This document shows, piece by piece, positions 3,191-59,538 of a stretch of DNA of 64,000 bases. The position numbers and the translations under genes were made by a program. Numbering within the stretch: the stretch's first letter is position 1; each line of letters starts with the position of its first letter. The notes beneath the pieces are model-generated. The model had not been told where the DNA came from, made no database searches, and saw nothing but the letters and a program-made list of their open reading frames with translations. The DNA is taken from positions 1 to 64,000 of the IMG/VR virus record IMGVR_UViG_3300012931_000759. One strand, 5' to 3'.

Positions 3191-3475
3191 TCATTCCAGG
3201 CGAGGTCAAGTTGAGGATCGAGGAACTCACCAAGGAGCAGCTTGTGGTCGAGGTGCTGAAGCTCCAGCACATGCTGGACAGCCGCGTGGACGACCGCGAA
3301 CTGCGCAGAAAACTGGCCACTTTCGAGGACGAATGCTACAAATAGGGCTTTGTCCTGGACAAGATCTGCCAGACCCTGCACCATTTCGGGTACGAGACGC
3401 CCGACCTCCCAAGCATCGCCAAGGCGATCCAGAAGGTTTTCTATGTCGACTGGAAACCACAGAGGAAAACCGACG

Positions 3476-4828: not shown

Positions 4829-5398
4829 ATGAAGGAGCTACGAGAACTGATTGCCCTGATCGACATGGACGGCACTATTGCCGATTTCGACGGCGCTATG
4901 CTCCGCGAGCTGGAGCGGATCGCGTCGCCAGGCGAGCCCTCCCTCATTGGGCAGGACGGGCAGTCTGTCGACCTGCCGCACATTAGATCTCGCCGTAAAC
5001 TGATCAGGAATCAGCCGGGCTTCTGGCGATGGCTGCCAATCTACCCTCCCGGTTTCGAGATCATGGCGGAACTGAAGGCGCTTGGGTTCCAATGCCATGT
5101 GCTGACCAAGGGTCCGAAGAATGAGCCTGCCGGGTGGATGGAGAAGGTTGAGTGGTGCCGCAGGCACCTGCCTGACACGCCCGTCATCATTTCCGAGGAC
5201 AAGAGCTTGGTGTATGGTCGTGTGCTTGTAGACGACTGGAGTGACTATTTTCTGCCTTGGCTGGAACATCGTCCGCGCGGTCTGGTTGTCGCTCCAGCCC
5301 ATCCGTGGAACAAAGATGTCAAACATCCACAGGTTGTGCGGTATGATGGCAACAATTTGGAAGAGGTTCGGCAACGGCTGACAGAGGCAATAGACTGA
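4829..5398 (+). CDS. 5'(3')-deoxyribonucleotidase (HAD, NT5C family)
   Basis: IDMDGTIADF, EKVEWC, DKSLVYGRVLVDD, HPWN. Confidence 0.85.
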   Translation: MKELRELIALIDMDGTIADFDGAMLRELERIASPGEPSLIGQDGQSVDLPHIRSRRKLIRNQPGFWRWLPIYPPGFEIMAELKALGFQCHVLTKGPKNEPAGWMEKVEWCRRHLPDTPVIISEDKSLVYGRVLVDDWSDYFLPWLEHRPRGLVVAPAHPWNKDVKHPQVVRYDGNNLEEVRQRLTEAID

Positions 5399-14533: not shown

Positions 14534-16852
14534 ATGGAAGTGATTCGACTACCTTTCCTGCCTTTGCGAGGGCAGAACCTCATCATGTTCCCGACGCTGG
14601 GATATCACGTCGACCTCACGCGCCCAGGCTCGCTGTCAACCGTCAGAAAGGCCATCGACACAGGAAAACGCATCGTCATCGGGTTCCATAAAGCTCTCCA
14701 GAAAGGATCCTCCACGAGAAGTACCGTCTCCGACTTCTGGGAGACGGGCTGCGAAGCGGTGATCAAGGACATTTCCGATCAGGGCGACGCTAAGTGCGTT
14801 TTCGTAGAGGGCGTACGACGCGTCAGGATCTGCGCAATCAGGGCCGACAAGGGCCTGTACTCCTGCGATTTCGAGCCAATTGGCGAACTTGAGTTCGAAA
14901 TGACCGACCATCTTGGCGAACTCGCTATGTATCTCCAGAGCTTGGCGCTCGGTCTTGAGAGTACGGCTGCTTTTTCGCCAATGGTTAAACCTAGGACAAG
15001 CGGCGATCTTGGCCGGTTCGTCGACACGATAGCCTTCAAGATCGCATCAACCAGCAAGGAGAGGATCAGACTGCTTCGCGCCACTGATACACGAAAGCGG
15101 ATCGAGATGTTACACATGATCCTAACCCACTTGGTAGAGCGCGAGAACGAGCGTATTGCTGAACAAACTGTCAAGGAGATGGCTGGGCAACAGAGTGGAG
15201 GATCTACGGCCACCATTACTACGAACAGGCCAGAAGCTCCGGTGGATGTTAAGGATTCCGAAGTTAAACGTCTGACTGACCTCGTAGCAGCCGCCGGGAT
15301 GAGCGACGAGGCCAAAGCTATTGCATCGGGTGAACTTCAGCGCCTACAGTTGATGTCCACCAGTTCGTCCGAATACAACGTCACGGTTACTTACCTCGAC
15401 ATCCTGGCCGGGCTGCCATGGTCCAAGATGAGCGAGGACCGGGTCGACATCGAGGAGGCCCGCCGGGTACTCGATGAGGATCATTACGGTCTACAAGAGC
15501 CGAAAGAGCGGATCTTGGAATTCCTGGCCGTGCGAAAGCTGACCGCAAAAAACGGCGGAGCAATCCTGTGCTTCACTGGTCCTCCGGGCGTGGGCAAAAC
15601 CAGCCTCGGGCGGAGCATCGCTAAGGCCACGGGTAGGGTCTTCATCCGCACATCCCTTGGTGGGGTGCGCGACGAGGCTGAGATTCGTGGTCACCGCCGG
15701 ACCTACATCAGCGCGCTGCCTGGACGGATCCTACAGGAGCTGCGCAAGGCCGATGTCAGGAATCCCGTGTTCATGCTGGACGAGATCGACAAGCTTAGCA
15801 AAGATGTCCATGGCGATCCGGCGTCCGCCCTCTTGGAGGCGCTCGACTCCGAACAGAATTTTGCTTTCAAGGATAACTACCTCGGGGCCGGGTTCGACCT
15901 CTCGCAGACCTTCTTTATCGGCACGGCGAACGATGTGTATGGCATGCCACCTGCGCTGCGAGATCGGCTTGAGATCGTGGAGATCCCAGGCTATTCTGCC
16001 ATGGCCAAGTCCCACATCGCTAGGAAGTACCTGATTCCCAAGCAAAAGGAAAAAAACGGCCTGGCGGATCGGGACATTGTCATCCTGGACGAGGCCATCG
16101 ATCACATTATTGGATCCTACACGAGCGAGGCCGGCGTCCGCGTGCTTGAGCGATGCTGCGGATCTATCTTCAGGAAGCTGGCTGTGTATGCCGCCGCAGA
16201 ACGCGATGTACCAAGCACCGTGGACACCAGGATGGTAAAGGAGCTACTTGGACCGCCCAAGCTATTTGTACAGAAAATGGCCGACAAGCCATTGGTTGGA
16301 ACCAGTACCGGCTTGGCATGGTCGGCAGCAGGCGGATCTATCCTATTCGTGGAATCGGCGTTGATTCCAGGCTCTGGCGGCTTAGAGATGACTGGGAACC
16401 TTGGGCAGATCTTACAGGAGTCAGCTCAGGTGGCACACACCTGGATCCTGACCAACGCAAAACGGTTCGGTATGGATACTGGGTCATTGGAGAAGAAGAC
16501 TATCCGTATTCATCTTCCCGCAGGAGCTATCCCGAAGGATGGTCCAAGTGCGGGTCTGGCCATGGTGGTTTCGGTCTTCTCGCTGTTGTTCAATATTCCA
16601 GCAAGGAACGATATCGCTATGACCGGCGAGATTTCCCTACGCGGCAAGGTCATGCCGGTCGGCGGGATCGTGGAAAAACTTCTGGCGGCGCATAGGGCTG
16701 GGATCAGAGAAATTATTCTGCCGAAGGACAATACAGACTCACTGACCGAGGTTCCCGAAGAGGTGGCGCGGGAGATGAGAATTCATCTGGTCGACCAGCT
16801 AGATGAGGTTCTAGATATCGCACTGGTCGAACGCAAGGAAATAGCGACTTGA
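14534..16852 (+). CDS. lon: Lon protease
   Basis: LON N-domain, GPPGVGKTS, GHRRTY, LDEIDK, PKDGPSAG, GGIVEKLLAAHRAG. Confidence 0.97.
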   Translation: MEVIRLPFLPLRGQNLIMFPTLGYHVDLTRPGSLSTVRKAIDTGKRIVIGFHKALQKGSSTRSTVSDFWETGCEAVIKDISDQGDAKCVFVEGVRRVRICAIRADKGLYSCDFEPIGELEFEMTDHLGELAMYLQSLALGLESTAAFSPMVKPRTSGDLGRFVDTIAFKIASTSKERIRLLRATDTRKRIEMLHMILTHLVERENERIAEQTVKEMAGQQSGGSTATITTNRPEAPVDVKDSEVKRLTDLVAAAGMSDEAKAIASGELQRLQLMSTSSSEYNVTVTYLDILAGLPWSKMSEDRVDIEEARRVLDEDHYGLQEPKERILEFLAVRKLTAKNGGAILCFTGPPGVGKTSLGRSIAKATGRVFIRTSLGGVRDEAEIRGHRRTYISALPGRILQELRKADVRNPVFMLDEIDKLSKDVHGDPASALLEALDSEQNFAFKDNYLGAGFDLSQTFFIGTANDVYGMPPALRDRLEIVEIPGYSAMAKSHIARKYLIPKQKEKNGLADRDIVILDEAIDHIIGSYTSEAGVRVLERCCGSIFRKLAVYAAAERDVPSTVDTRMVKELLGPPKLFVQKMADKPLVGTSTGLAWSAAGGSILFVESALIPGSGGLEMTGNLGQILQESAQVAHTWILTNAKRFGMDTGSLEKKTIRIHLPAGAIPKDGPSAGLAMVVSVFSLLFNIPARNDIAMTGEISLRGKVMPVGGIVEKLLAAHRAGIREIILPKDNTDSLTEVPEEVAREMRIHLVDQLDEVLDIALVERKEIAT

Positions 16853-30048: not shown

Positions 30049-31467
30049 TTGAAAACATTGAGGGAGTTCCGTAAAACAACAGGTCGTGGGAATAGAGACC
30101 AGGTCTGGTTTATTGGCATCAACCCTGCTGACGCTACTAGGATAATAATCAAGTGGGGCGTTTTGAATGGCACGCTCCAGGAGACACAGGATTGTCCTGG
30201 AGATTGCGGCACTATCGGTCATTCCGATTACCAGACACCAGAGCAGTATGCCAAGACTTGTCTTGAAAGGGAAACGAGACTAAAAAAAGAACAAGGGTAT
30301 GTCGAATGGGTGGATGGAAAACCTGTTTCCACGGTGGCGACCGCTATCGACTTCACAAAACCTTTGCCCAAAAACTTGTCTTTCTACAAACCACAAACCA
30401 AGATCGAGGACAAGAAACTGGCGAAGTTACATCTGGCTGGTCGGGCGATCTGGACCTTAAAGCGTGATGGGATGATGCATATTGCGGTGCGCAGTCGTGA
30501 CGCATGGCAGATCTACTCGCGCCGCATGGATCTGGCAACGGAGCGTTTCCCACATGTCGTGGAAGCACTTGGCAAGCTTCGACTGCCGGATGGCACCATA
30601 CTGCTTGGTGAGATGGTATTACTGAAGGATGATGGGCGCGACGATTTCAAGGGCGTCAGCCGTATCTGCCGGAGTGACACAGATCTTGCACTGGCTTACC
30701 AGGGGCTAGGGACTTTTCCGAAAGACCATGATGACAAGGTCATTCTGGGCAAGACCTCGTACTATGTTTTTGACATTGCGTTTTTAAATGGCAAAGATGG
30801 CATCATGGAGAAGGAGATCCACAAGCGTCTGCGTATTCTCCGGAATGTTTTCTTGGAGTTCGATCCCGACTTGTCGGAAAACGCAACAGGACAGGGGACT
30901 TCCATACGGGAACTGATGGCCGAAAGCAAGCGGCGTGAGCGCATGCTGCGCACCTACTATGTAGCACCCCTAAAGATCTTCCACGCCTCTCCTGAGACAG
31001 ATCTGGACATCGCGAAGAAACTCAAAATTGAAGGGTTTGTGGTCTTAGATGCAGACGCAATCTATGGAGACAAGGGGTATTCGTTCGACGGCAAAGCTCA
31101 GCGCCCAGAAGGCATCTGGAAACGGAAACCAAAATGCGAGGACGAATTCATCGTGGTAGGTGTGTACGAGGGCACTGGTAGAAATATGGGCAAGTTGGGT
31201 GGATTCTACCTGGAGCAGATCCATCCTGGAACCGGCAAGAGGATCGATTGTGGTAAATGCGGCGGAGGATTTACTGACGAACAGAGGGAGGAATTCTGGC
31301 AGGATCAAGACAGCCTGATTAACACAACGGTCAGGATTGAGTTTGACTCTCGGCAACCTGCCAAAAACGGCTCGTATGCGCTGCGTTTTCCAGTTTATCT
31401 GGGAGCTTCAGATAAAACTCCTAATGAATGTGTATCTCAAGGCCTGTCCGAAAACGATTCGGAGTGA
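30049..31467 (+). CDS. ATP-dependent DNA ligase
   Basis: KRDG, LGEM, YVFDI, EGFV, WKRKP, GGGFTD, LRFP. Confidence 0.9.
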   Translation: MKTLREFRKTTGRGNRDQVWFIGINPADATRIIIKWGVLNGTLQETQDCPGDCGTIGHSDYQTPEQYAKTCLERETRLKKEQGYVEWVDGKPVSTVATAIDFTKPLPKNLSFYKPQTKIEDKKLAKLHLAGRAIWTLKRDGMMHIAVRSRDAWQIYSRRMDLATERFPHVVEALGKLRLPDGTILLGEMVLLKDDGRDDFKGVSRICRSDTDLALAYQGLGTFPKDHDDKVILGKTSYYVFDIAFLNGKDGIMEKEIHKRLRILRNVFLEFDPDLSENATGQGTSIRELMAESKRRERMLRTYYVAPLKIFHASPETDLDIAKKLKIEGFVVLDADAIYGDKGYSFDGKAQRPEGIWKRKPKCEDEFIVVGVYEGTGRNMGKLGGFYLEQIHPGTGKRIDCGKCGGGFTDEQREEFWQDQDSLINTTVRIEFDSRQPAKNGSYALRFPVYLGASDKTPNECVSQGLSENDSE

Positions 31468-35643: not shown

Positions 35644-37122
35644 ATGGGCGCATCGATGAAGGTCAAAGCCTGGACGGACGGGGAAAAAGGCCAACCATCT
35701 TTCCCATCTAATTTCTCTGTCACTAAACGTTGGGAGGGTAGCTGTACCAGCTTGGCAAAAAATAGCAATAAATTCTTCCACATAGAGGTACAGGTTGCCC
35801 TAAACGGGCAAGCTCGCATTTACACGGTGTATGGTCGTGTAGGAAACAGCGGCGCACGAGAGTTTCGGTATTACTCTTCGGAGGCTGCTTGTTTGTCGGA
35901 CTATGAAGCACTGATCCACAAAAAACGCGATCGGAAAAAGGAGCCTTATACGGAGATCGACCTGGCCATCACGTCCGTTGGCTCCGAGGGTGCAAAGGCA
36001 ATCACCAAGCCGATGACTGGCATCTCGGCCTCGTCCGCTCCGGAGCAGAAAAGCACGCTCCATGCCGAGATACAACGGTTGGTGCGCCGATGGTTCGGGG
36101 ATACAGGACACTTCGTCGAAATGAACCTCAAATGCCCACTGGGCCAGCTGAGTGTCGAGCAAATCGACAAGGGGCGCGCCGTCCTGGATGAGTGTCGCAA
36201 CCGGATCAACACAAAAAGGAAAACCGATGAGGCCGAGTGGGATATGCTGACGTCCCAATTCTACAGCCTTGTACCTCATGTTCTCCCACGAAAAATCGAC
36301 GCTAGTGCCCTGCGGCTCGATGCCATAGACCGTATTATGGCAAGATCGGATATTCTTGACACTTTCCTTGACGCCAAGAATGTAGCCTCGGTTCTGGCTA
36401 AAGGCACGTCGGCGGATGCGCAGTATGCCAAACTACAGGCAAAGATGGAGTGGATGGATCCGCAGGATCCTGTTCGCCAATGGATAGAAAAACTTGTCCA
36501 CGAAACAAGGGCAAAGAACCACGCAGGTCTAGGCAGGCTCAAGGTGTTCAATGTATTCAGACTTTTGCGCAATGGGGAACTGGATCATTTTTCCGCCTCG
36601 CTCGAACGGATAGGCAGAGAAGTCAAAGGCAAAGGCCAGAAGCCAAGGTTTACCACCTTAGAACGCCCTGATTTGAGCAAAGACGAGCAGCAGGCTTTCG
36701 TGAATGCTAATGTCTGGCCCTTGTGGCACGGGACGCAGCCACAGAACATGGTCGGCATCATCTCGGCTGGACTGAAGATCAGACCTTCCGGATCGGTTTA
36801 CTCTGGCAGTATGTTTGGTGATGGAGCTTACTTTGCCGAGTCTTTTAGTAAGAGCGCAAACTATTCTGGTTGTAGGGGATCTTACTGGAGTAGAGATAGC
36901 GGGGAAGACAGAGCATTCGTGTTCTTGAACGATGTAATCATAGGCAATCCGCATATCGTATACACCTCCCAGTTTTTCCATGAGCCACCGTTCGGCACGC
37001 ATAGTGTGTATGCTCTGCCAGGACGGGGACTTTACAACTCGGAGAACATCACCTACAAACAATCTGGAGCTGGACAGCAGAACAGACTGCGCTATATCGT
37101 GGAGTTTCAATCGAACCAGTAG
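35644..37122 (+). CDS. PARP-like ADP-ribosyltransferase (WGR + helical regulatory + catalytic domains)
   Basis: NSNKFF...YGRVG (WGR), LTSQFYSLVPH, LWHGT, GSMFGDGAYFA, KSANY, NSE (H-Y-E triad). Confidence 0.9.
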   Translation: MGASMKVKAWTDGEKGQPSFPSNFSVTKRWEGSCTSLAKNSNKFFHIEVQVALNGQARIYTVYGRVGNSGAREFRYYSSEAACLSDYEALIHKKRDRKKEPYTEIDLAITSVGSEGAKAITKPMTGISASSAPEQKSTLHAEIQRLVRRWFGDTGHFVEMNLKCPLGQLSVEQIDKGRAVLDECRNRINTKRKTDEAEWDMLTSQFYSLVPHVLPRKIDASALRLDAIDRIMARSDILDTFLDAKNVASVLAKGTSADAQYAKLQAKMEWMDPQDPVRQWIEKLVHETRAKNHAGLGRLKVFNVFRLLRNGELDHFSASLERIGREVKGKGQKPRFTTLERPDLSKDEQQAFVNANVWPLWHGTQPQNMVGIISAGLKIRPSGSVYSGSMFGDGAYFAESFSKSANYSGCRGSYWSRDSGEDRAFVFLNDVIIGNPHIVYTSQFFHEPPFGTHSVYALPGRGLYNSENITYKQSGAGQQNRLRYIVEFQSNQ

Positions 37123-43122: not shown

Positions 43123-44742
43123 ATGTCGAAAATTGTCAAGTACGACGATGAAGCACGCCAACTGATCAAGAGCGGCGTGGACAAGCTCGCAAACGCCGTG
43201 AAGGTTACGCTCGGCCCAAAGGGCCGAAATGTCCTGCTACGCAGGGAATACGGCATGTCACACGTCACAAAGGATGGGGTGACCATTGCCAAGGAGATCA
43301 CTCTACGCGACCAGTTCGAGGACATGGGTGCACAGATGGTGAAGCACGCAGCCCAGACCACATGCGACGAGGCTGGGGACGGCACGACCACCGCAGCTCT
43401 GCTGAGCCAGGCCATCTACGCCAGCGGGTTGAAGCTGATGGCGGCTGGACACAATCCAATGGATCTGAAGCGCGGCATCGACAAAGCTGTCACCAAGGTG
43501 GTCGAAACTCTCGGCGGCCTCGCGCAAGAGACCAGGGATCCGAAATTGATTGCGCAGGTTGGCACAATCAGTGCCAACGGCGACACTACGATCGGCGGCC
43601 TTATCGCACAGGCGATGGAGAAGGTGGGGCGCGACGGCGTCGTCACCATCGAAGAGGCCAAGGGGCTCGATACGACGCTCGAAGTGACCGAGGGCATGCG
43701 GTTCGACCGCGGCTATCTGTCCTCCTATTTCGTCAATGTGCCCGAACGCGCCGAAGCTGTGCTCGACAACTGCCTGGTCCTGATCAGCGCGAACCGGATC
43801 GACAACGTACAGGATCTGGTGGAGCTGCTCAACACCGTGGCGAACGCGCAGGCACCGCTGCTAATCCTGGCGGATGACGTGGGCGGCACCGCCCTGCCAG
43901 CCCTGGTGATCAACAAGATGCGCGGCCTGTTGAAGGTTTGCGCGGTGAAGGCACCCGGATTCGGAGACAGGCGGCTCGACATGCTGAAGGATATTGCCGT
44001 CCTCACCGGAGCCACTCTGTTCTCTGAGGAAACCGGGGTCAAAATTCCGACAGCTACCGTCGGCATGCTTGGAAGGGCTGAGAAGGTCGTGATTACCAGG
44101 AACCACACGACCATCATCGGCGGCATGGGCACCAAGGAGGCCATCCGGGAGAGGATCGAGCAGGTGAAGCTCGACATCGAGCAGGCCACGAGCGAGTGGG
44201 ACAAGGGCAAGGCCCGCGAGCGCCTGGCCAAGCTGCTTGGGGGAGTGGCCGTGGTGCGTGTCGGAGCGCCGACCGAGGCCGAGATGAAGGAGAAGAAGGA
44301 CCGGGTCGAGGACGCCATGAACGCCACCAAGGCGGCCGTCGAGGAGGGTATCGTCCCTGGCGGCGGCGTGGCCCTGCTCCGCTGCTCCAAGTCCGTGGCC
44401 GACTTCATCGGGTCGCTGCCGGAAGTCGAACAGGCGGGAGCCCGCGTCATCCTGGAGGCCCTGCGGGCCCCGCTGAGGCAGATCGCGGCCAATGCCGGCG
44501 AGAGCCCCGACATGGTTGTCGCCACGGTTGATGGCGAGGTTCCGAACTATGGTTGGAACGCCGCCACCGGAGAGTATGTGGACATGATGGAGGTCGGCAT
44601 CATCGACCCGAAGAAGGTCGTGCGCTGTGCGCTCCAGAACGCCGCCAGTGTGGCGGGCCTGCTGCTGACCACCGAAGCGATGGTTGCGGACGATCCGGAC
44701 GAGGAGAAGCCGAAAGGCGGCCCCCCGCAGATGGGGATGTAG
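43123..44742 (+). CDS. groL: Chaperonin GroEL
   Basis: VTLGPKGRNV, GDGTTTA, GMRFDRGY, KAPGFGDRR, EGIVPGGG. Confidence 0.98.
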   Translation: MSKIVKYDDEARQLIKSGVDKLANAVKVTLGPKGRNVLLRREYGMSHVTKDGVTIAKEITLRDQFEDMGAQMVKHAAQTTCDEAGDGTTTAALLSQAIYASGLKLMAAGHNPMDLKRGIDKAVTKVVETLGGLAQETRDPKLIAQVGTISANGDTTIGGLIAQAMEKVGRDGVVTIEEAKGLDTTLEVTEGMRFDRGYLSSYFVNVPERAEAVLDNCLVLISANRIDNVQDLVELLNTVANAQAPLLILADDVGGTALPALVINKMRGLLKVCAVKAPGFGDRRLDMLKDIAVLTGATLFSEETGVKIPTATVGMLGRAEKVVITRNHTTIIGGMGTKEAIRERIEQVKLDIEQATSEWDKGKARERLAKLLGGVAVVRVGAPTEAEMKEKKDRVEDAMNATKAAVEEGIVPGGGVALLRCSKSVADFIGSLPEVEQAGARVILEALRAPLRQIAANAGESPDMVVATVDGEVPNYGWNAATGEYVDMMEVGIIDPKKVVRCALQNAASVAGLLLTTEAMVADDPDEEKPKGGPPQMGM

Positions 44743-53582: not shown

Positions 53583-53699
53583 GGGGATGTTGCCAAACAG
53601 GAAAAGGCACCTGCTTCAGCATTCGGTTCTCGGGACCAAAACATCCGAAGCACACGCTGGGGCGCAAGCCCATTGTTGGTTCGATTCCAACCATCTCCA
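53583..53699 (+). ncRNA. tRNA-like RNA with the conserved module replacing the anticodon arm (family copy B1)
   Basis: GGGGATG/CATCTCC acceptor, D arm, TTCGATT T loop; module tgcttc..TCG-gttc/ggac-CAAA..gaagCACACGC. Confidence 0.75.
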
Positions 53700-54981: not shown

Positions 54982-55037
54982 CTTCCAACGCGCCTGGGCC
55001 CACAAGCCCGGGCGTTTTGGGTTTATGGGGAGAAAGA

Positions 55038-55625
55038 GTGCTAGATAAGACGCAAAGACCTGATAAACCAGAGAAACTCCATTGTAGGGAATGTAAACAG
55101 GAATTCCCATTTACTCCGGAGTTTTTCTATCGGGATCGAAAGCGCAAATATGGTCTCGATACCGTATGTAAGTTCTGTAGCAGACTTGGCACCAGGCGAC
55201 GCTATGCTGAAAACCCAGAATTGTGGCATCAAAGCAATCGTAAATATCGCCAAACCCATCTAGAAGAGACGAACAATAAAAAGAGAAAATGGGCAAAGAG
55301 GAATCCTGATAAGGAGCGGAACGCAAGGCTGAAATACACATACGGAATTACGCTGGACGAATTCAATCACATTTTGATGCTCCAAGAAAACTGTTGTGCT
55401 ATCTGCGGTTATTCTTTTGGGGGCAAGAAACCTAGCGTAGACCACGACCACACGACAGGTGTGGTTAGAGGGCTGTTGTGCGACAGGTGTAATTTCGGTA
55501 TAGGATGTTTCGAGGATGACGCCGCGCGACTTGAGAAAGCAGCCATTTACCTCAATAAGTGGAAGGAAAGCATCAAGAAGGTCGTAGGCGTCGAATCTCC
55601 CAACGAGATTGGTCTGGACATTTGA
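55038..55625 (+). CDS. Endonuclease VII-domain homing endonuclease
   Basis: YGITLDEF...CAICG...VDHDHTTGVVRGLLCDRCNFGIG. Confidence 0.9.
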   Translation: MLDKTQRPDKPEKLHCRECKQEFPFTPEFFYRDRKRKYGLDTVCKFCSRLGTRRRYAENPELWHQSNRKYRQTHLEETNNKKRKWAKRNPDKERNARLKYTYGITLDEFNHILMLQENCCAICGYSFGGKKPSVDHDHTTGVVRGLLCDRCNFGIGCFEDDAARLEKAAIYLNKWKESIKKVVGVESPNEIGLDI

Positions 55626-55849
55626 AAGGAAAAGATGATGAAATCCAAGAGAGAGAACACTGTCCCGAGTTGTGTGAGTTTGTGGAGAATGTCAAAGATA
55701 TGGTGAATGCTGACAAGCAGCAGGATGAGGAGATTCCAAAGTTTAAGGTGCCTCTTTCTAGTTGGCTGGGACTCGGCGCTGTGATTTTAGGAATCGTGGG
55801 TTTCGTCGTTGTAATGTTCCGCATCTGGATATAGGTTTCGTGAATAGTT

Positions 55850-55936
55850 GGGGTCGTTGACGATAAGGTCATCGAGCTGGGCCGTAACCCCAGCGCTGTA
55901 ATAGCCAATCCGATTCGAGTTCGGACGACCCCACCA
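55850..55936 (+). tRNA. tRNA-Tyr(GTA)
   Basis: GGGGTCG/CGACCCC, ccGTAac loop, long variable arm, encoded CCA. Confidence 0.8.
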
Positions 55937-56023
55937 AGGAGTAGCAGATGGATATACAATACTTTGTATTTCTTGACAGGTTGAAACGGATGCGCCGCGA
56001 CGGCGATTCCAATTGTGACGCGC

Positions 56024-56139
56024 GCATCCTTAGTGAAATGGAATCACAGCAGGCTTTTGTTGATGAAAGGAAATTAGTTGGTTCGATTCCAACCATCAGC
56101 GCAACCTGCACATTGGGGGTTCGAGTCCCTCAGGATGCA
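56024..56139 (+). tRNA. tRNA with an acceptor/T-arm minihelix nested in its anticodon loop
   Basis: Outer GCATCCT/AGGATGC and GCAGG/CCTGC; inner GTTGATG/CATCAGC plus GTTGG-TTCGATT-CCAAC. Confidence 0.7.
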
Positions 56140-56142
56140 AAT

Positions 56143-56214
56143 GAGGCTGAAGCTTTGACGGCGAAGCCGTAGGCTCTTAACCTATAGAACCGAGTTCGAC
56201 TCTCGGCAGCCTCA
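56143..56214 (+). tRNA. tRNA-Lys(CTT)
   Basis: GAGGCTG/CAGCCTC; GTAGG ctCTTaa CCTAT; TTCGACT. Confidence 0.85.
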
Positions 56215-56215
56215 C

Positions 56216-56286
56216 TTCGGAGTCGTCCAATAGGAAGGACGGCGGTCTTTGACACCGCATATCCCAGTCCGAGTCTGGCTCTGGAT
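56216..56286 (+). tRNA. tRNA-Gln(TTG)
   Basis: GCGGT ctTTGac ACCGC; atypical T loop TCCGAGT and short T stem. Confidence 0.7.
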
Positions 56287-56294
56287 TTAATATT

Positions 56295-56367
56295 GATCTC
56301 GTCGTCTAGGGGCAGTGGATAGGACACTCTCACTGTCCAGACGCCAGTTCAATTCTGGTCGAGGTCA
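56295..56367 (+). tRNA. tRNA-Glu(CTC)
   Basis: GATCTCG/CGAGGTC; GGACA ctCTCac TGTCC; TTCAATT. Confidence 0.75.
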
Positions 56368-56377
56368 CGAAAACTCC

Positions 56378-56531
56378 GATGCCCTTGGTATCGGCACCGT
56401 CGAATGCGCATTCCACGGTGGAGATGAGGCGATCGCCATCTTTTGGGATGGCGTGAGGTTTCAACATTGACAACTGAATAGTGGTAATTGACTGCGGTGA
56501 GCTGAGAATGTAGGCTCTCCGCCGGGGCATC
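56378..56531. ncRNA. Candidate structured RNA inside the tRNA cluster
   Basis: GATGCCC/GGGCATC closing stem; CGCCATC/GATGGCG; GCGGtGAGC/GCTCtCCGC. Confidence 0.45.
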
Positions 56532-56565
56532 GACGGCGCGAGCGTGCTGGGCGGTGTCCCATCGA

Positions 56566-56637
56566 GGGATCATAGCTCAATGGGCAGAGCGCGAGACCGA
56601 AAATTTCGTTACCCCCGTCCGAATCGGGGTGATCCCA
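56566..56637 (+). tRNA. tRNA-Phe(GAA)
   Basis: GGGATCA/TGATCCC; CGAGA ccGAAaa TTTCG; T loop TCCGAAT. Confidence 0.75.
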
Positions 56638-56643
56638 CAATAG

Positions 56644-56685
56644 ATCGCGCGCGTTGATGTAGCGGAAAAGTTTCGCGTCGCTTTT
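56644..56685 (+). promoter_or_regulatory. Conserved intergenic motif copy 4
   Basis: ATCGCGCGCGTTGATGTAGCGG...TTTCGCGTCGCTTTT. Confidence 0.65.
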
Positions 56686-56703
56686 GAATGAAAGGACGGC
56701 AGC

Positions 56704-57000
56704 ATGGGCAAGAGCATCGACCTGCGCGCCCAGTTCGGGCGCAAGTTCACCGAGGATGAGGAGGCTTTCGAGATGGCCCAGTGCGAGGAATGGATGGCCG
56801 ACGAGATGCGCTCCTACTGGAGAAGGATACAGCGCTCCTCGTGGCCGACTGAGGATCCAGGCGGGCGTTGCGCGAATTGCGGGCTTGAGGCGCGTTTTGC
56901 CAAAGCCTGTGTTGTTGGGGCCGCCTGCTACGATGGCGAGTGGTGTTGCTCTACCGAATGCGACGCGCAACTGACACGGGAAGGATGCCCGCTGGAATAA
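56704..57000 (+). CDS. Hypothetical Cys-rich protein
   Basis: AAGGA RBS; CANC...CCSTEC. Confidence 0.55.
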   Translation: MGKSIDLRAQFGRKFTEDEEAFEMAQCEEWMADEMRSYWRRIQRSSWPTEDPGGRCANCGLEARFAKACVVGAACYDGEWCCSTECDAQLTREGCPLE

Positions 57001-57206
57001 TAGACTAGGAAAGGGAAAGCGATGAAGCTGAGGAAGCTACGCAGGATACTGAGGCAGGCGGCGTTTAACGCCGATGGTCTCAACCCTCAGGTTGAGGTCT
57101 GTCTGGGCGACAAAATATTGCGCATCAAGCACATTGGGCAGTTTGGGGTTGTACCGGATGTCGTTATCGAACTTGAGGATCCCGAGAAAGAAACGGGTTG
57201 TTAATC

Positions 57207-57527
57207 ATGCCGCGCAAGAAGAAAGAGGCTCCTTCGGAGCCGAAGCCGACCAGGGTCGAAATCGAGACTTTTAGGGAACCTGATTCCTACTGGCTGGGCC
57301 AGCTCAGGAAAGACAATCCGTCCTGTTTCAACGGTGACATCCAGGTACACAGATATCGCGTGACGGTTGAACTGATCGAGGAGTCGCCAGAAGTGATCGG
57401 TGCGAGAATCCAGGAACTCTGGAACAATTGTGACAACTGGCATCATCACGATCCACTTAGATTCGCAGCCAAGAAAATTGGATGGGAGTTGAAAGGCGAC
57501 TTTGGGAACAAGAAGAAGGAGGCTTGA
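57207..57527 (+). CDS. Hypothetical phage protein
   Basis: PSCFNG...YRVTVELIEE. Confidence 0.6.
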   Translation: MPRKKKEAPSEPKPTRVEIETFREPDSYWLGQLRKDNPSCFNGDIQVHRYRVTVELIEESPEVIGARIQELWNNCDNWHHHDPLRFAAKKIGWELKGDFGNKKKEA

Positions 57528-57599
57528 CAATTGCTTTCGACATTATATAAATCGTCGGAAGCTGGAATTCAACTTTTGGGACACATTAAAGGAACAAAT

Positions 57600-57818
57600 A
57601 TGGCTGCCACAATCACGGTTCTCAAAAATAAGTTGAGTAAAGTGCGCAAACAGATAGAACTATTGAATTCACAAGAATCAGAATTATACAAACAGTTGGC
57701 CCTATTATGTGGGCGCACAGGTCACCAGTGGGAAGAGGAGTGGGCTGCGGTGGGTATTCATAAATACTCTCGAAAAATAGGATGTTTCCGTTGCGCGATT
57801 TGCGGTACACTGTCCTAG
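57600..57818 (+). CDS. Small coiled-coil/zinc-ribbon protein
   Basis: AAGGA RBS; C...GH.W...CAICG. Confidence 0.5.
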   Translation: MAATITVLKNKLSKVRKQIELLNSQESELYKQLALLCGRTGHQWEEEWAAVGIHKYSRKIGCFRCAICGTLS

Positions 57819-57830
57819 TGGAAAGGAGGC

Positions 57831-57858
57831 TTGACAATCGCCTCTAGGATGATAAATT
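57831..57858 (+). promoter_or_regulatory. Sigma70-like promoter upstream of the second ncRNA cluster
   Basis: TTGACA...TAAATT; AAGGAGGCTTGACAAT is also present at about 57516. Confidence 0.5.
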
Positions 57859-57871
57859 GATTGTTGTAAAT

Positions 57872-57978
57872 GGGGAGGTCGCCCAATTGGTAGGGCAACA
57901 GACCTGCTTCGCCTCTCGGTTTTTTGGAACCATTTGATGAAGCCTACAAGCATGCTCGTTCGAATCGAGCCCTCCCCA
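57872..57978 (+). ncRNA. tRNA-like RNA with the module replacing the anticodon arm (family copy B3)
   Basis: GGGGAGG/CCTCCCC; gcttc..TCG-gttt/gaac-CATT..gaagc-cTACAAGC; TTCGAAT. Confidence 0.75.
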
Positions 57979-57982
57979 CAAT

Positions 57983-58115
57983 GGGTCAGTAGCCGAATGG
58001 TATAGGCAAAAGCATTTTGGAGCTTTCAAACAGCAACAAGCTTTACCGCTCGGCTCCTCACGGAGCCATAAGGTAAAGCTCACAAGCATTGGAGGTTCGA
58101 TTCCTCCCTGGCCCA
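57983..58115 (+). ncRNA. tRNA-like RNA with the module in the variable region (family copy B4)
   Basis: GGGTCAG/CTGGCCC; GCTTTACC-gcTCG-GCTCC/GGAGC-CATAa-GGTAAAGC-tCACAAGC; TTCGATT. Confidence 0.75.
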
Positions 58116-58117
58116 AC

Positions 58118-58248
58118 AGGACGCGCAAAGGGGAAAAGTCTACAAGCGAATTAGCTCAGTCGGTTTGAGCGTCTGACTATGGATCAGAAGGTCAAGGGTT
58201 CAAATCCCTTATCCGCGACAAAATCCGACTTGCTCACTCGCGCGTCCT
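58118..58248 (+). ncRNA. Y-RNA-like RNA: terminal stem enclosing an Arg-like tRNA body with ATG anticodon (family copy A3)
   Basis: AGGACGCG/CGCGTCCT, CAAA, AAGTC/GACTT, TACAAGC, cacTCG; TCTGA ctATGga TCAGA. Confidence 0.75.
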
Positions 58249-58875
58249 AATTTTCTGTTCTACGATGCCGACAATGATATCTAGAAACCGTTGCCCTTTG
58301 GTTGGTTTGAAGTTTTTCATTGTCGACACGTCGATGATACAGAGAGCAATGCCCCTCTCGGCGCAGGCAGCGAATTTCCGATGGTCATTGGTTTGGATGG
58401 AGGCAAGTTTCTCCGTCCCGTGGATCGGCTCGTAATGGTAGATCCCGTTGAGTTCGAACGCTAAATTGAGGCTTGGAAAATGGATGTCGAGTTCGGAGTT
58501 GATCGCCTCTTTGGCGTTGAACATAATCTCCAGGTCGGGATAGAGTTTCCGCAGTTGCTCCTCCAGCCAGACCTCAAGTTTAGAGCGGCGGGTGCCATGG
58601 GTTTTGTGGAGATTGTTGTAGGTGGCGGCACATGATTTGGAACAGAAAAGATTGTTGCTTTTGCTGTGTTTCCTATTTTGAAGCAGGGTGCTTTTTCTGC
58701 GACCGAAAAGTGTACCGCATTGTTGGCAAGGGATCAATTTGGGAAGTCGTTTTCCACTCTGGTTGAATGCTTGGGCACACTTGTTGGAACAGAATTTGTA
58801 CTTGCGCGAGTCACGAATGAACCACGACCTGCGTCGTTTGAAGGTGGTACCACAGTTATCGCATTGAAGTTCCAT
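58234..58875 (-). CDS. PD-(D/E)xK endonuclease with N-terminal zinc fingers, inserted in the RNA array
   Basis: CxxC...FCSxxC repeats; SKLE...ELDI...LAFELNGIYHY. Confidence 0.75.
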   Translation of the reverse strand: MELQCDNCGTTFKRRRSWFIRDSRKYKFCSNKCAQAFNQSGKRLPKLIPCQQCGTLFGRRKSTLLQNRKHSKSNNLFCSKSCAATYNNLHKTHGTRRSKLEVWLEEQLRKLYPDLEIMFNAKEAINSELDIHFPSLNLAFELNGIYHYEPIHGTEKLASIQTNDHRKFAACAERGIALCIIDVSTMKNFKPTKGQRFLDIIVGIVEQKIRTRE

Positions 58876-58987
58876 AGATTTTCCTTGTTTTAATGCGAAA
58901 CAATTGATAGATTTCGACCCAAAATATCCACACGGCTCCACCCGCATTGCGCGGACAGAGCAATGAAGCCAATACAGGCTTCATCAC

Positions 58988-59125
58988 GCCCCCGTCGACC
59001 AATTGGAAGGTCAACAGTTTATTCAGACTGTCAAATCAGCACATCTGCTTCCGCACTCGGTTCTTTGAACCAATTGTTGAAGCCCACACGCGAAATTAGT
59101 CCAGGTTCGAATCCTGGCGGGGGCA
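58988..59125 (+). ncRNA. tRNA-like RNA with the module in the variable region (family copy B5)
   Basis: GCCCCCG/CGGGGGC; gcttc-cgcacTCG-GTTC/GAAC-CAAT..gaagc-cCACACGC; TTCGAAT. Confidence 0.75.
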
Positions 59126-59223
59126 CGCCGGGGACGACTGAAAACACCAGCCTTGTCCGGAAGGGGACAAGGGGTCATCCCCAATTTATTCCAAACAGCG
59201 GGAAAGACAGCAAGGAACCAGCG

Positions 59224-59538
59224 ATGATCGATTTTGACAATGCCTCGGCGAATCTGGTCGAGTACTTGAGGAGATGCGGTTCCCGCAACGAGGCCAACAT
59301 CTCCATGGACAGGGAAGATCACTACAAACCGATGTACAGGGCGGTGGCTCTGCTGGTTGCCCCAACGCATCCGTTCATCGACGAAATGCTCGGCGGCGAG
59401 AGACCCACAAGAGAACAGGCACTCGCTATTCTTTGGCATGCGCATCCGTATTTCGCGCATGTGCTGGATACGGAACCGGAGTTGTTTGAACAGATGTGGG
59501 AACACCACACCAGTGCGTGGGATTGGGACAAGAAGTAG
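59224..59538 (+). CDS. Hypothetical protein
   Basis: AAGGA RBS. Confidence 0.55.
   Translation: MIDFDNASANLVEYLRRCGSRNEANISMDREDHYKPMYRAVALLVAPTHPFIDEMLGGERPTREQALAILWHAHPYFAHVLDTEPELFEQMWEHHTSAWDWDKK

Follow-up and report, generated by a model that had tools for sequence, protein, structure and literature searches.

The window analysed here, a stretch of 64,000 nt, covers the opening 64 kb of an IMG/VR virus record of wetland origin. The record measures 340,392 bp and has a GC content of about 55% and an estimated completeness of 84%. Proteins encoded in the record match phage families, including clamp-loader-like ATPases, a helicase, GroEL (a phage GroEL lies at 43123–44742 of the window) and endonuclease VII/HNH enzymes. 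Elsewhere in the window, positions 35644–37122 encode a phage protein that combines a WGR domain with a regulatory and a catalytic domain of PARP (Pfam E values of 1.5e-11, 1.5e-12 and 1.2e-23, respectively), and positions 14534–16852 encode a Lon-protease-like protein of 772 aa (phrog_15585, 723 bits) that shares 35–39% identity, over nearly the full length, with proteins of Moraxella and Acinetobacter phages. Between 53.5 and 59.2 kb, ARAGORN and Rfam detect a dense tRNA cluster, and we focus on a locus within it where the gene order is Tyr, interrupted Lys(UUU), Lys(CUU), Glu and Phe, with a gap of only 3 nt between the two lysine isoacceptors. The tRNA-Tyr gene next to the interrupted gene has an encoded CCA, and a sigma-70-like promoter, TTGACA-16-TAAATT, is present in the cluster; on these two features of the sequence the host is probably bacterial. 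A promoter and terminator scan around 56024–56139 returned nothing convincing immediately upstream. Two further features of the cluster are recorded here for their own sake. The repeat GGCTTGACAAT, a −35-like box, occurs exactly at 57521–57531 and 57828–57838, the second copy lying about 35 nt upstream of a tRNA-like gene at 57872, and with at most one mismatch it has 4 matches in the window, against 1.1 expected. Genes resembling endonuclease VII/HNH homing endonucleases lie among the tRNA genes at 55017–55625 (plus strand) and 58234–58947 (minus strand), and could drive gene conversion or protect interrupted alleles.

The features on which the argument rests are listed below; coordinates are those of the window unless stated otherwise, and R1 is the covariance model introduced further on.

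53583–53699, plus strand: tRNA-like gene sharing 21 nt with the insert, at 53675–53695 (BLAST within the genome, sequence).
56024–56058, plus strand: exon 1 of tRNA-Lys(UUU) (Rfam alignment, MFE fold; insert-free Lys(UUU) genes align up to CUUUU).
56059–56102, plus strand: tRNA-like intervening sequence of 44 nt, made up of a minihelix and a 2-nt tail (the positions deleted in alignments of insert-free Lys(UUU) genes).
56059–56065, plus strand: 5' strand of the inner acceptor-like stem, GUUGAUG (folds; pairing in the four-gene alignment).
56066–56076, plus strand: single-stranded linker of 11 nt, AAAGGAAAUUA (folds).
56077–56093, plus strand: inner T arm, GUUGG-UUCGAUU-CCAAC, with a consensus T loop (folds; part of the shared 21-mer).
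56094–56100, plus strand: 3' strand of the inner acceptor-like stem, CAUCAGC (folds; four-gene alignment).
56101–56102, plus strand: putative 2-nt tail, GC, a 'discriminator' G plus one base, running from the inner helix to exon 2 (placed by the requirement for a 7-nt loop and by the alignments).
56103–56139, plus strand: exon 2 of tRNA-Lys(UUU) (Rfam alignment, MFE fold, alignments of insert-free genes).
56143–56215, plus strand: tRNA-Lys(CUU), uninterrupted (ARAGORN and Rfam).
Genome positions 70885–71004 (L139:6885–7004), outside the window: the phage's own tRNA-His(GUG), with a 49-nt insert of the same helix-linker-hairpin form (47.6 bits against R1, over the whole nested model).

The outer tRNA is complete. 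Rfam model RF00005 covers 56024–56139 over all of its positions (1–71/71) at 50.8 bits, against a gathering score of 29, and the alignment skips 47 nt, all of them in the anticodon loop. Exon 1 contains the acceptor 5' strand GCAUCCU, U8 and A9, the D arm GUGA-AAUGGAA-UCAC, the anticodon stem 5' strand GCAGG and loop residues C32, U33, U34, U35 and U36. Exon 2 consists of A37 and A38, the anticodon stem 3' strand CCUGC, the variable loop ACAUU, the T arm GGGGG-UUCGAGU-CCCUC, the acceptor 3' strand AGGAUGC and the discriminator A73, with no CCA encoded at its 3' end. All 21 stem pairs of this cloverleaf are standard, and U8, G18 and G19, U33 and the T loop are all there. For the full 116 nt, the MFE fold and the centroid fold are identical and give the nested structure, in which four outer stems enclose a 7-bp stem, the 11-nt linker and a 5-bp stem with a UUCGAUU loop; the fold has a free energy of −41.4 kcal/mol (z = −3.3), and none of 200 shuffled sequences was as stable. 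Folded alone, the insert forms the minihelix (−11.6 kcal/mol, z = −2.4), a stability matched by 5 of 200 shuffled sequences. Within the 116-nt fold, a near-continuous rod holds the anticodon bases, each of them either paired or stacked. The initial annotation of this DNA had described an outer cloverleaf carrying a minihelix in its anticodon loop, and the sequence read-out, the Rfam match and the MFE fold agree that this anatomy is right. The default ARAGORN call at the locus, tRNA-Ser(cga) at 56053–56139, was rejected: pairing in its acceptor stem is poor, and the call takes no account of the outer cloverleaf, which is perfect.

The identity of the tRNA depends on how the loop is closed across the insert, which is flanked by CUUUU on the 5' side of the minihelix and GCAA on the 3' side. 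Residues C32, U33, U34, U35 and U36 and the discriminator A73 can be read directly in the DNA, while A37 and A38 would adjoin U36 only once 56059–56102 has been removed, a removal that we infer. Boundaries at 56058|56059 and 56102|56103 restore a canonical loop, and excision between them gives a 72-nt gene with the loop CUUUUAA, which ARAGORN calls tRNA-Lys(ttt). Relatives point the same way. Among 228 tRNAs of the phage and its relatives, the best match to the exons is the uninterrupted Lys(ttt) gene of relative L002, which shares its D arm pattern and T stem with the interrupted gene and differs from it by paired changes in the acceptor and D stems. We built a covariance model, R1, from 56024–56139 with its nested structure, and three insert-free tRNA-Lys(UUU) genes (L080:84–155, L014:6102–6173 and L031:6001–6073) align to it with exactly 44 positions deleted, between CUUUU and AA; the L002 gene (L002:1888–1959), also insert-free, aligns with 46 positions deleted. 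The top insert-free matches to R1 are mostly Lys(UUU) genes.

An alanine identity had also been proposed, as the initial annotation removed the insert plus two T residues to leave the loop CTTGCAA, that of tRNA-Ala(UGC). That excision is unsupported; a canonical loop is restored by removal of the 44 nt at 56059–56102. Furthermore, pair 3:70 of the outer acceptor stem is A3-U70, so that the G3:U70 pair of alanine identity is absent, and the homologous Lys(UUU) genes give CUUUUAA. With G3:U70 missing and tRNA-Lys(UUU) as the closest insert-free genes, alanine identity is unlikely. For the same reasons an Ala(cgc) call, made by ARAGORN with the -i option, was rejected. Read from its sequence, 56024–56139 is a tRNA-Lys(UUU) gene with an interruption that falls between U36 and A37. 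In long ORFs, about 36% of the lysine codons are AAA, and a spliced tRNA-Lys(UUU) would thus be useful to the phage.

The insert itself has the shape of a tRNA top half. The first base of its inner helix, G+1, directly follows U36, giving a U-1/G+1 junction, and the linker AAAGGAAAUUA stands where a full tRNA would have its D arm, its anticodon arm and its variable region; the counterpart of the 2-nt tail is 1–3 nt long in other nested genes. A 21-mer, comprising the inner T arm and the first 4 nt of the inner 3' strand, recurs at 53675–53695 and, in at least 48 IMG/VR contigs, forms the 3' portion of ordinary tRNAs; the insert is thus tRNA-derived rather than a chance hairpin, and by its sequence it derives from a normal tRNA of a common type minus the D, anticodon and variable regions. 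Because the 21-mer is such a common tRNA 3' part, direct descent of the insert from the gene at 53583–53699 is weakened and not proven; the acceptor stem of that gene (GGGGAUG/CAUCUCC) differs from that of the insert at pairs 2 and 3, on both strands.

The phage clade also contains a tRNA gene family with a giant, structured variable-region arm of about 45–65 nt, represented in the window at 57983–58115 and 58988–59126 and in relatives at L002:9511–9656, L003:14240–14380, 14586–14715 and 15332–15459, L004:2408–2545 and 3234–3371, and L005:4489–4620 and 5081–5222. The genes at 53583–53699 and 57872–57978 probably belong to it as well, although in these two the giant arm seems to replace the whole anticodon arm. 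Two motifs of the arm are invariant, CTCG and an ACA(A/C)G immediately 5' of the T stem, and its two helices are backed by two-sided changes (15 of 17 predicted pairs). Rfam labels these genes only as 'tRNA', and we know of no described equivalent. Apparent 8-nt anticodon loops occur in 57983–58115 (AUUUUGGA) and 58988–59126 (UUAUUCAG), and L004:3234–3371, the orthologue of the former, has a 7-nt loop, AUUUGGA. The tRNA at 58145–58219 (61.6 bits) has the loop CUAUGGA, with AUG given as its anticodon by ARAGORN (His with A34), and its counterpart at L004:3400–3471 is called Ile(tat). A 191-aa ORF at 58963–59538 overlaps the tRNA-like gene at 58988–59126 and is probably spurious or has a later start.

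The nested design is found well beyond this gene. We scanned IMG/VR for two T loops 15–45 nt apart and passed the hits through a strict structural parser. Most of the matches listed were a full tRNA followed by a duplicated 3' fragment rather than nested genes; among the matches listed, the same design was found in L110 and L085, which are phages unrelated to the source phage. The L110 gene is a tRNA-His(GUG) in a 116-kb record of 39% GC and scores 62.6 bits against R1, and the L085 gene, from a record of 32% GC, is a tRNA-Thr(UGU) or tRNA-Ile(UAU) scoring 50.5 bits. The phage's own tRNA-His(GUG) provides a further case, its insert having the inner stem GGGCGUU/GAUGCCC, the hairpin GGUGG-GUCGGCA-CCGCC, whose loop is not a T loop, and the tail CU, followed by AA. 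Common to these genes is an acceptor-like stem with a T-like arm placed in the anticodon loop, followed by 1–3 nt and by an exon 2 that begins with AA. In alignment A3 of the four nested genes, the structure is 99.2% paired and the inner 7-bp helix 100% paired, although these counts come from four sequences only and are biased towards the nested structure because the alignment was fitted to R1, which was built from one of them. In the same alignment, five of the seven inner pairs have changed on both sides and the first pair is always G-C. A MAFFT alignment of three nested genes (A1) was left out because its D loop was misaligned. Copies of the type known from Lak megaphages were also found in L031 (tRNA-Leu UAA, in a 345-kb record) and L115, and besides Lys, the nested architecture spans His, Thr/Ile, Tyr, Phe, Gly and Leu tRNA genes. 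Two details of these other genomes may be added. The L085 nested gene lies 5 nt after an ordinary tRNA-Thr(UGU) (L085:4140–4336), and its inner helix is followed by U-CCA; cuts at the 5' end of the helix and after the CCA would give the loop CUUAUAA, that of Ile(UAU) and not of Thr. At L098:7827–7979, a tRNA with a long variable arm carries an insert that begins alike (CUU|GUCG).

The closest published parallel comes from Lak megaphages, whose tRNA introns were described as 'enigmatic' and their position as 'offset by one nucleotide' from the canonical site; one of these introns 'may encode a tRNA' (Devoto et al. 2019, Nat Microbiol, PMC6784885). According to the same paper, Lak introns are identical across cohorts and intron-less alleles exist. 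When we re-parsed Table S6 of that paper, all of the introns (Tyr, Phe, Thr and Gly; 79–114 nt) were found to end in an acceptor-like stem on a T arm, the Thr intron being a whole tRNA by Rfam; the inner strand is followed by c or ct and then by the AA of exon 2, with the junction shifted by one base, a shift that the intron-less alleles require. Both Lak introns and the insert described here thus occupy the anticodon loop of a phage tRNA, combine an acceptor-like stem (7–8 bp in Lak) with a T arm, and reach the AA of exon 2 after 1–2 nt. In both, the position lies one base 5' of the canonical 37/38 site, the 36|37 boundary here giving CUUUUAA. They differ in length, 79–114 nt against 44 nt, and in the 5' leader of Lak introns, where a conserved hairpin and an A-rich spacer together take up about 27 nt; this leader has no counterpart here, as the inner helix starts right after U36. 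Since the leader precedes the tRNA-like part, the Lak 5' junction does not coincide with the 5' end of the inner helix. The insert in question, on the other hand, lies in the tRNA-Lys of an unrelated, GC-rich (~55%) wetland phage, and only insert-bearing copies of this gene were found, whereas Lak has known intron-less alleles. A literature search found no mechanism for Lak introns published since 2019. Because the same design occurs in the phage's own tRNA-His, in L110, in L085 and in Lak-type introns, the insert at 56059–56102 is, on sequence comparison, a minimal, leader-less variant of a recurrent phage tRNA intervening sequence.

Insert-free orthologues in related phages, which the initial annotation had suggested looking for, were not found in IMG/VR patterns, metagenome contigs or relatives L001–L008. 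Exact-pattern scans of IMG/VR for 56024–56139, with the insert as well as without it, turned up nothing. A scan of metagenome contigs anchored on a neighbouring 98-aa protein recovered only the source contig and one near-identical, error-rich contig, both with the insert. Relatives L001–L008, found via a neighbouring 661-aa protein, with whole-record tRNA scans of three of them, have many tRNAs and no orthologue; the closest compared relative, L004 (78% identity in the 661-aa protein), is without the gene. Scans for intron-less alleles of the L110 and L085 nested genes likewise found none. As for copies of the locus itself, positions 55000–58500 occur in two Logan assemblies, which belong to separate studies (2018 and 2022) and to different wetland samples, as single long contigs with 0 differences and no joints, at depths of 10.5 and 29.3. 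A third contig, L137, from another metagenome project, has the same Tyr-Lys(UUU)-Lys(CUU)-Glu-Phe cluster and the same insert, and is riddled with homopolymer errors, which indicates that it was made from other data.

We consider the best reading to be that 56059–56102 is a tRNA-like intervening sequence that is spliced out, with RNase P and RNase Z-type enzymes as the possible nucleases; to this reading we assign a probability of about 0.5. Among mechanisms, a route through these two enzymes and a ligase ranks first in our model. First of all, the 116-nt precursor would fold with the anticodon buried in a rod that prolongs the anticodon stem, and the minihelix would be taken as a substrate for tRNA end processing. 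Second, the 5' cut would fall after U36, at an RNase P-type site with U-1/G+1, and the 3' cut 1–2 nt beyond the inner 3' strand, at an RNase Z-type site. RNase P and RNase Z both leave 3'-OH and 5'-P ends. Third, the two halves would be held together by the acceptor and anticodon stems, and the 3'-OH/5'-P ends in the nicked anticodon loop would be sealed by an ATP-dependent ligase to yield a 72-nt tRNA with the loop CUUUUAA.

There are precedents for parts of this route. Elements of tRNA shape are cut out by RNase P and RNase Z in MALAT1 mascRNA and in mitochondrial 'tRNA punctuation', where a tRNA-shaped module in a longer transcript recruits end-processing enzymes, as the present one could; from its sequence and fold, the minihelix offers a 12-bp coaxial acceptor/T stack, a T loop, G+1 and U-1. 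In those systems, however, the flanks are released and not rejoined, so that the ligation step would be new, and the inner helix here is followed by GCAA rather than by a 3' RCCA. Resealing is known from phage T4, in which Pnkp and Rnl1 repair tRNA-Lys after PrrC, a host defence nuclease, has cut in the anticodon loop 5' of U34. As in T4, a phage-related activity would reseal the broken anticodon loop of a tRNA-Lys(UUU) whose ends are kept together by the tRNA body. The two cases differ in that no Rnl1 or Pnkp homologue was found in the record and that the other nested genes are not tRNAs for lysine. The phage record, 84% complete, has no match above cut-off to RtcB, T4 Rnl1 or a splicing endonuclease. 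Two ligase-like phage proteins, encoded at 30049–31467 of the window and at genome positions 170084–173980, match the ATP-dependent DNA ligase family, and a weak match to the Rnl2 family was rejected as the nucleotidyltransferase domain of a DNA-ligase-family protein. A phage RNA ligase, to which resealing had initially been attributed, was thus not found, the ligases of the record being of the DNA-ligase family only. Presence of RNA ligases is inconsistent in other intron-bearing phage records, with four in one and none in another.

The view of the insert as a tRNA-like intron, which the initial annotation had offered together with removal by RNase P and 3'-processing nucleases, agrees with the findings in its first part, as the design recurs in the phage's own tRNA-His, L110, L085 and Lak, and the 5' end of the inner helix coincides with the end of exon 1. 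Strict RNase P and RNase Z cuts, on the other hand, do not fit throughout. With RNase Z cutting directly behind the discriminator, the resulting loop would have 8 nt (CUUUUCAA). G36 and G37 form part of the inner helix in the tRNA-His copy, and RNase P cutting at the end of that helix would thus clip the anticodon. The leader of about 27 nt that precedes the tRNA-like part in Lak is a further weakness of this mechanism. The 36/37 members are equally compatible with another rule, by which a nuclease would measure its distance along the coaxial rod, starting at the anticodon stem.

Of the competing explanations, the one that survives best is that the gene is disrupted, a tRNA fragment or selfish tRNA-derived element having entered an accessory tRNA-Lys(UUU) whose RNA is never repaired, which would make it a young pseudogene; it would be tolerated because the host tRNA-Lys suffices. 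We regard this as rather unlikely, with several observations on each side. No splicing enzymes were recognised in the phage record, the closest compared relative lacks the gene and no insert-free allele turned up. The T arm of the insert is a common tRNA sequence with a copy 2.4 kb upstream, and recombination is plausible among tRNA and homing-endonuclease-like genes. Furthermore, the known copies are all near-identical, which leaves no divergence from which selection might be read. However, the exons are without any decay, and the insertion point is one that exactly restores the canonical 7-nt loop. A second tRNA of this phage shows the same architecture at the same loop position, as do unrelated phages, and two-sided changes preserve the inner helix; the identity of Lak introns across cohorts (PMC6784885) also speaks against loss of function.

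A second alternative, which we judge improbable, is that the RNA works unspliced, so that either the 116-nt RNA or its RNase P/RNase Z products, a free minihelix and two halves, act as a decoy, sponge or regulator. The RNA would be a tRNA-Lys look-alike whose anticodon is hidden from host anticodon nucleases, or a competitor for tRNA-binding defence or processing proteins; this is the 'double-elbow' mimic of the initial annotation. The paired or stacked anticodon in the MFE and centroid folds is consistent with such a role, as is the presence of several other non-standard tRNA-like genes in the same phage, and the anticodon nuclease PrrC has tRNA-Lys(UUU) as its classical target. The sharing of the architecture by His, Thr/Ile, Tyr, Phe, Gly and Leu genes, on the other hand, means that it is not specific to Lys-directed defence. 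A decoy also leaves unexplained why removal of the insert restores the canonical loop exactly, and its binding partner is purely hypothetical.

It is very improbable that the insert belongs to a known intron type, either group I or a bulge-type (BHB) intron removed by a splicing endonuclease with RtcB, the latter implying an archaeal host. The anticodon loop is a frequent position for both, and ARAGORN reports the gene when introns are allowed. Group I introns interrupt bacterial and phage genes, including tRNAs at the anticodon loop, with cyanobacterial tRNA-Leu UAA as an example (review: PMC3984707). The interrupted gene here is likewise a bacterial-type tRNA gene broken in the anticodon loop, but group I introns exceed 200 nt and have a conserved catalytic core. 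At 44 nt the insert is far too short for this core, and no Rfam intron or ribozyme family matches within 55000–59000 at E<=1; given this length and the fact that tRNA is the only Rfam family to match, a group I intron is excluded. Archaeal and eukaryal BHB introns (EndA/Sen, with RtcB or Trl1) are similarly short, sit in the anticodon loop, depend on proteins and pair the precursor anticodon with intron bases. No BHB motif is present here, however, as the MFE and centroid folds show, instead of paired 3-nt bulges 4 bp apart, a continuous helix whose only irregularities are a single mismatch and a 1-nt bulge. The position that we propose is 36/37; the 37/38 position would give G37. Neither tRNA_int_endo (PF01974) nor RtcB (PF01139) was found in the phage record, and the sigma-70-like promoter and the CCA encoded on tRNA-Tyr indicate a bacterial host.

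That the insert is an assembly chimera or sequencing artefact, a concern of the initial annotation in keeping with a metagenome-derived record and repeat-rich tRNA clusters, is hardly credible, given that the 3.5 kb is identical, without joints or variants, in two other assemblies at 10.5x and 29.3x and that L137 carries the same insert in different data, with the proviso that one of the matching assemblies may be the source sample and that contigs cannot reveal rare insert-free variants.

To our knowledge, the self-splicing group I type is the only kind of tRNA intron recognised in bacteria and phages, and short tRNA introns that need proteins for their removal are characteristic of archaea and eukaryotes. 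Against this background, the recurrence of the nested design in huge phages hints at a still undescribed route of tRNA splicing in bacteria. The locus described here extends the phenomenon of the Lak introns to an unrelated wetland phage, and in it the element is pared down to 44 nt between clear landmarks, G+1 immediately after U36 and a 2-nt tail before A37, in a helix-linker-hairpin design that is conserved across different tRNAs and phages. As a tentative and somewhat doubtful extension of our preferred reading, huge phages may possess a third kind of tRNA splicing, distinct from self-splicing and from the BHB-dependent type, in which a miniature tRNA top half directs RNase P and RNase Z-type cuts, so that end-processing enzymes of the cell itself would act as splicing endonucleases, followed by an ATP-dependent ligase, with the 44-nt insert as its minimal natural substrate. 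The 44-nt case makes tRNA mimicry as a splicing signal directly testable at the bench, and if the RNA is not spliced, it would represent a new kind of tRNA-shaped decoy.
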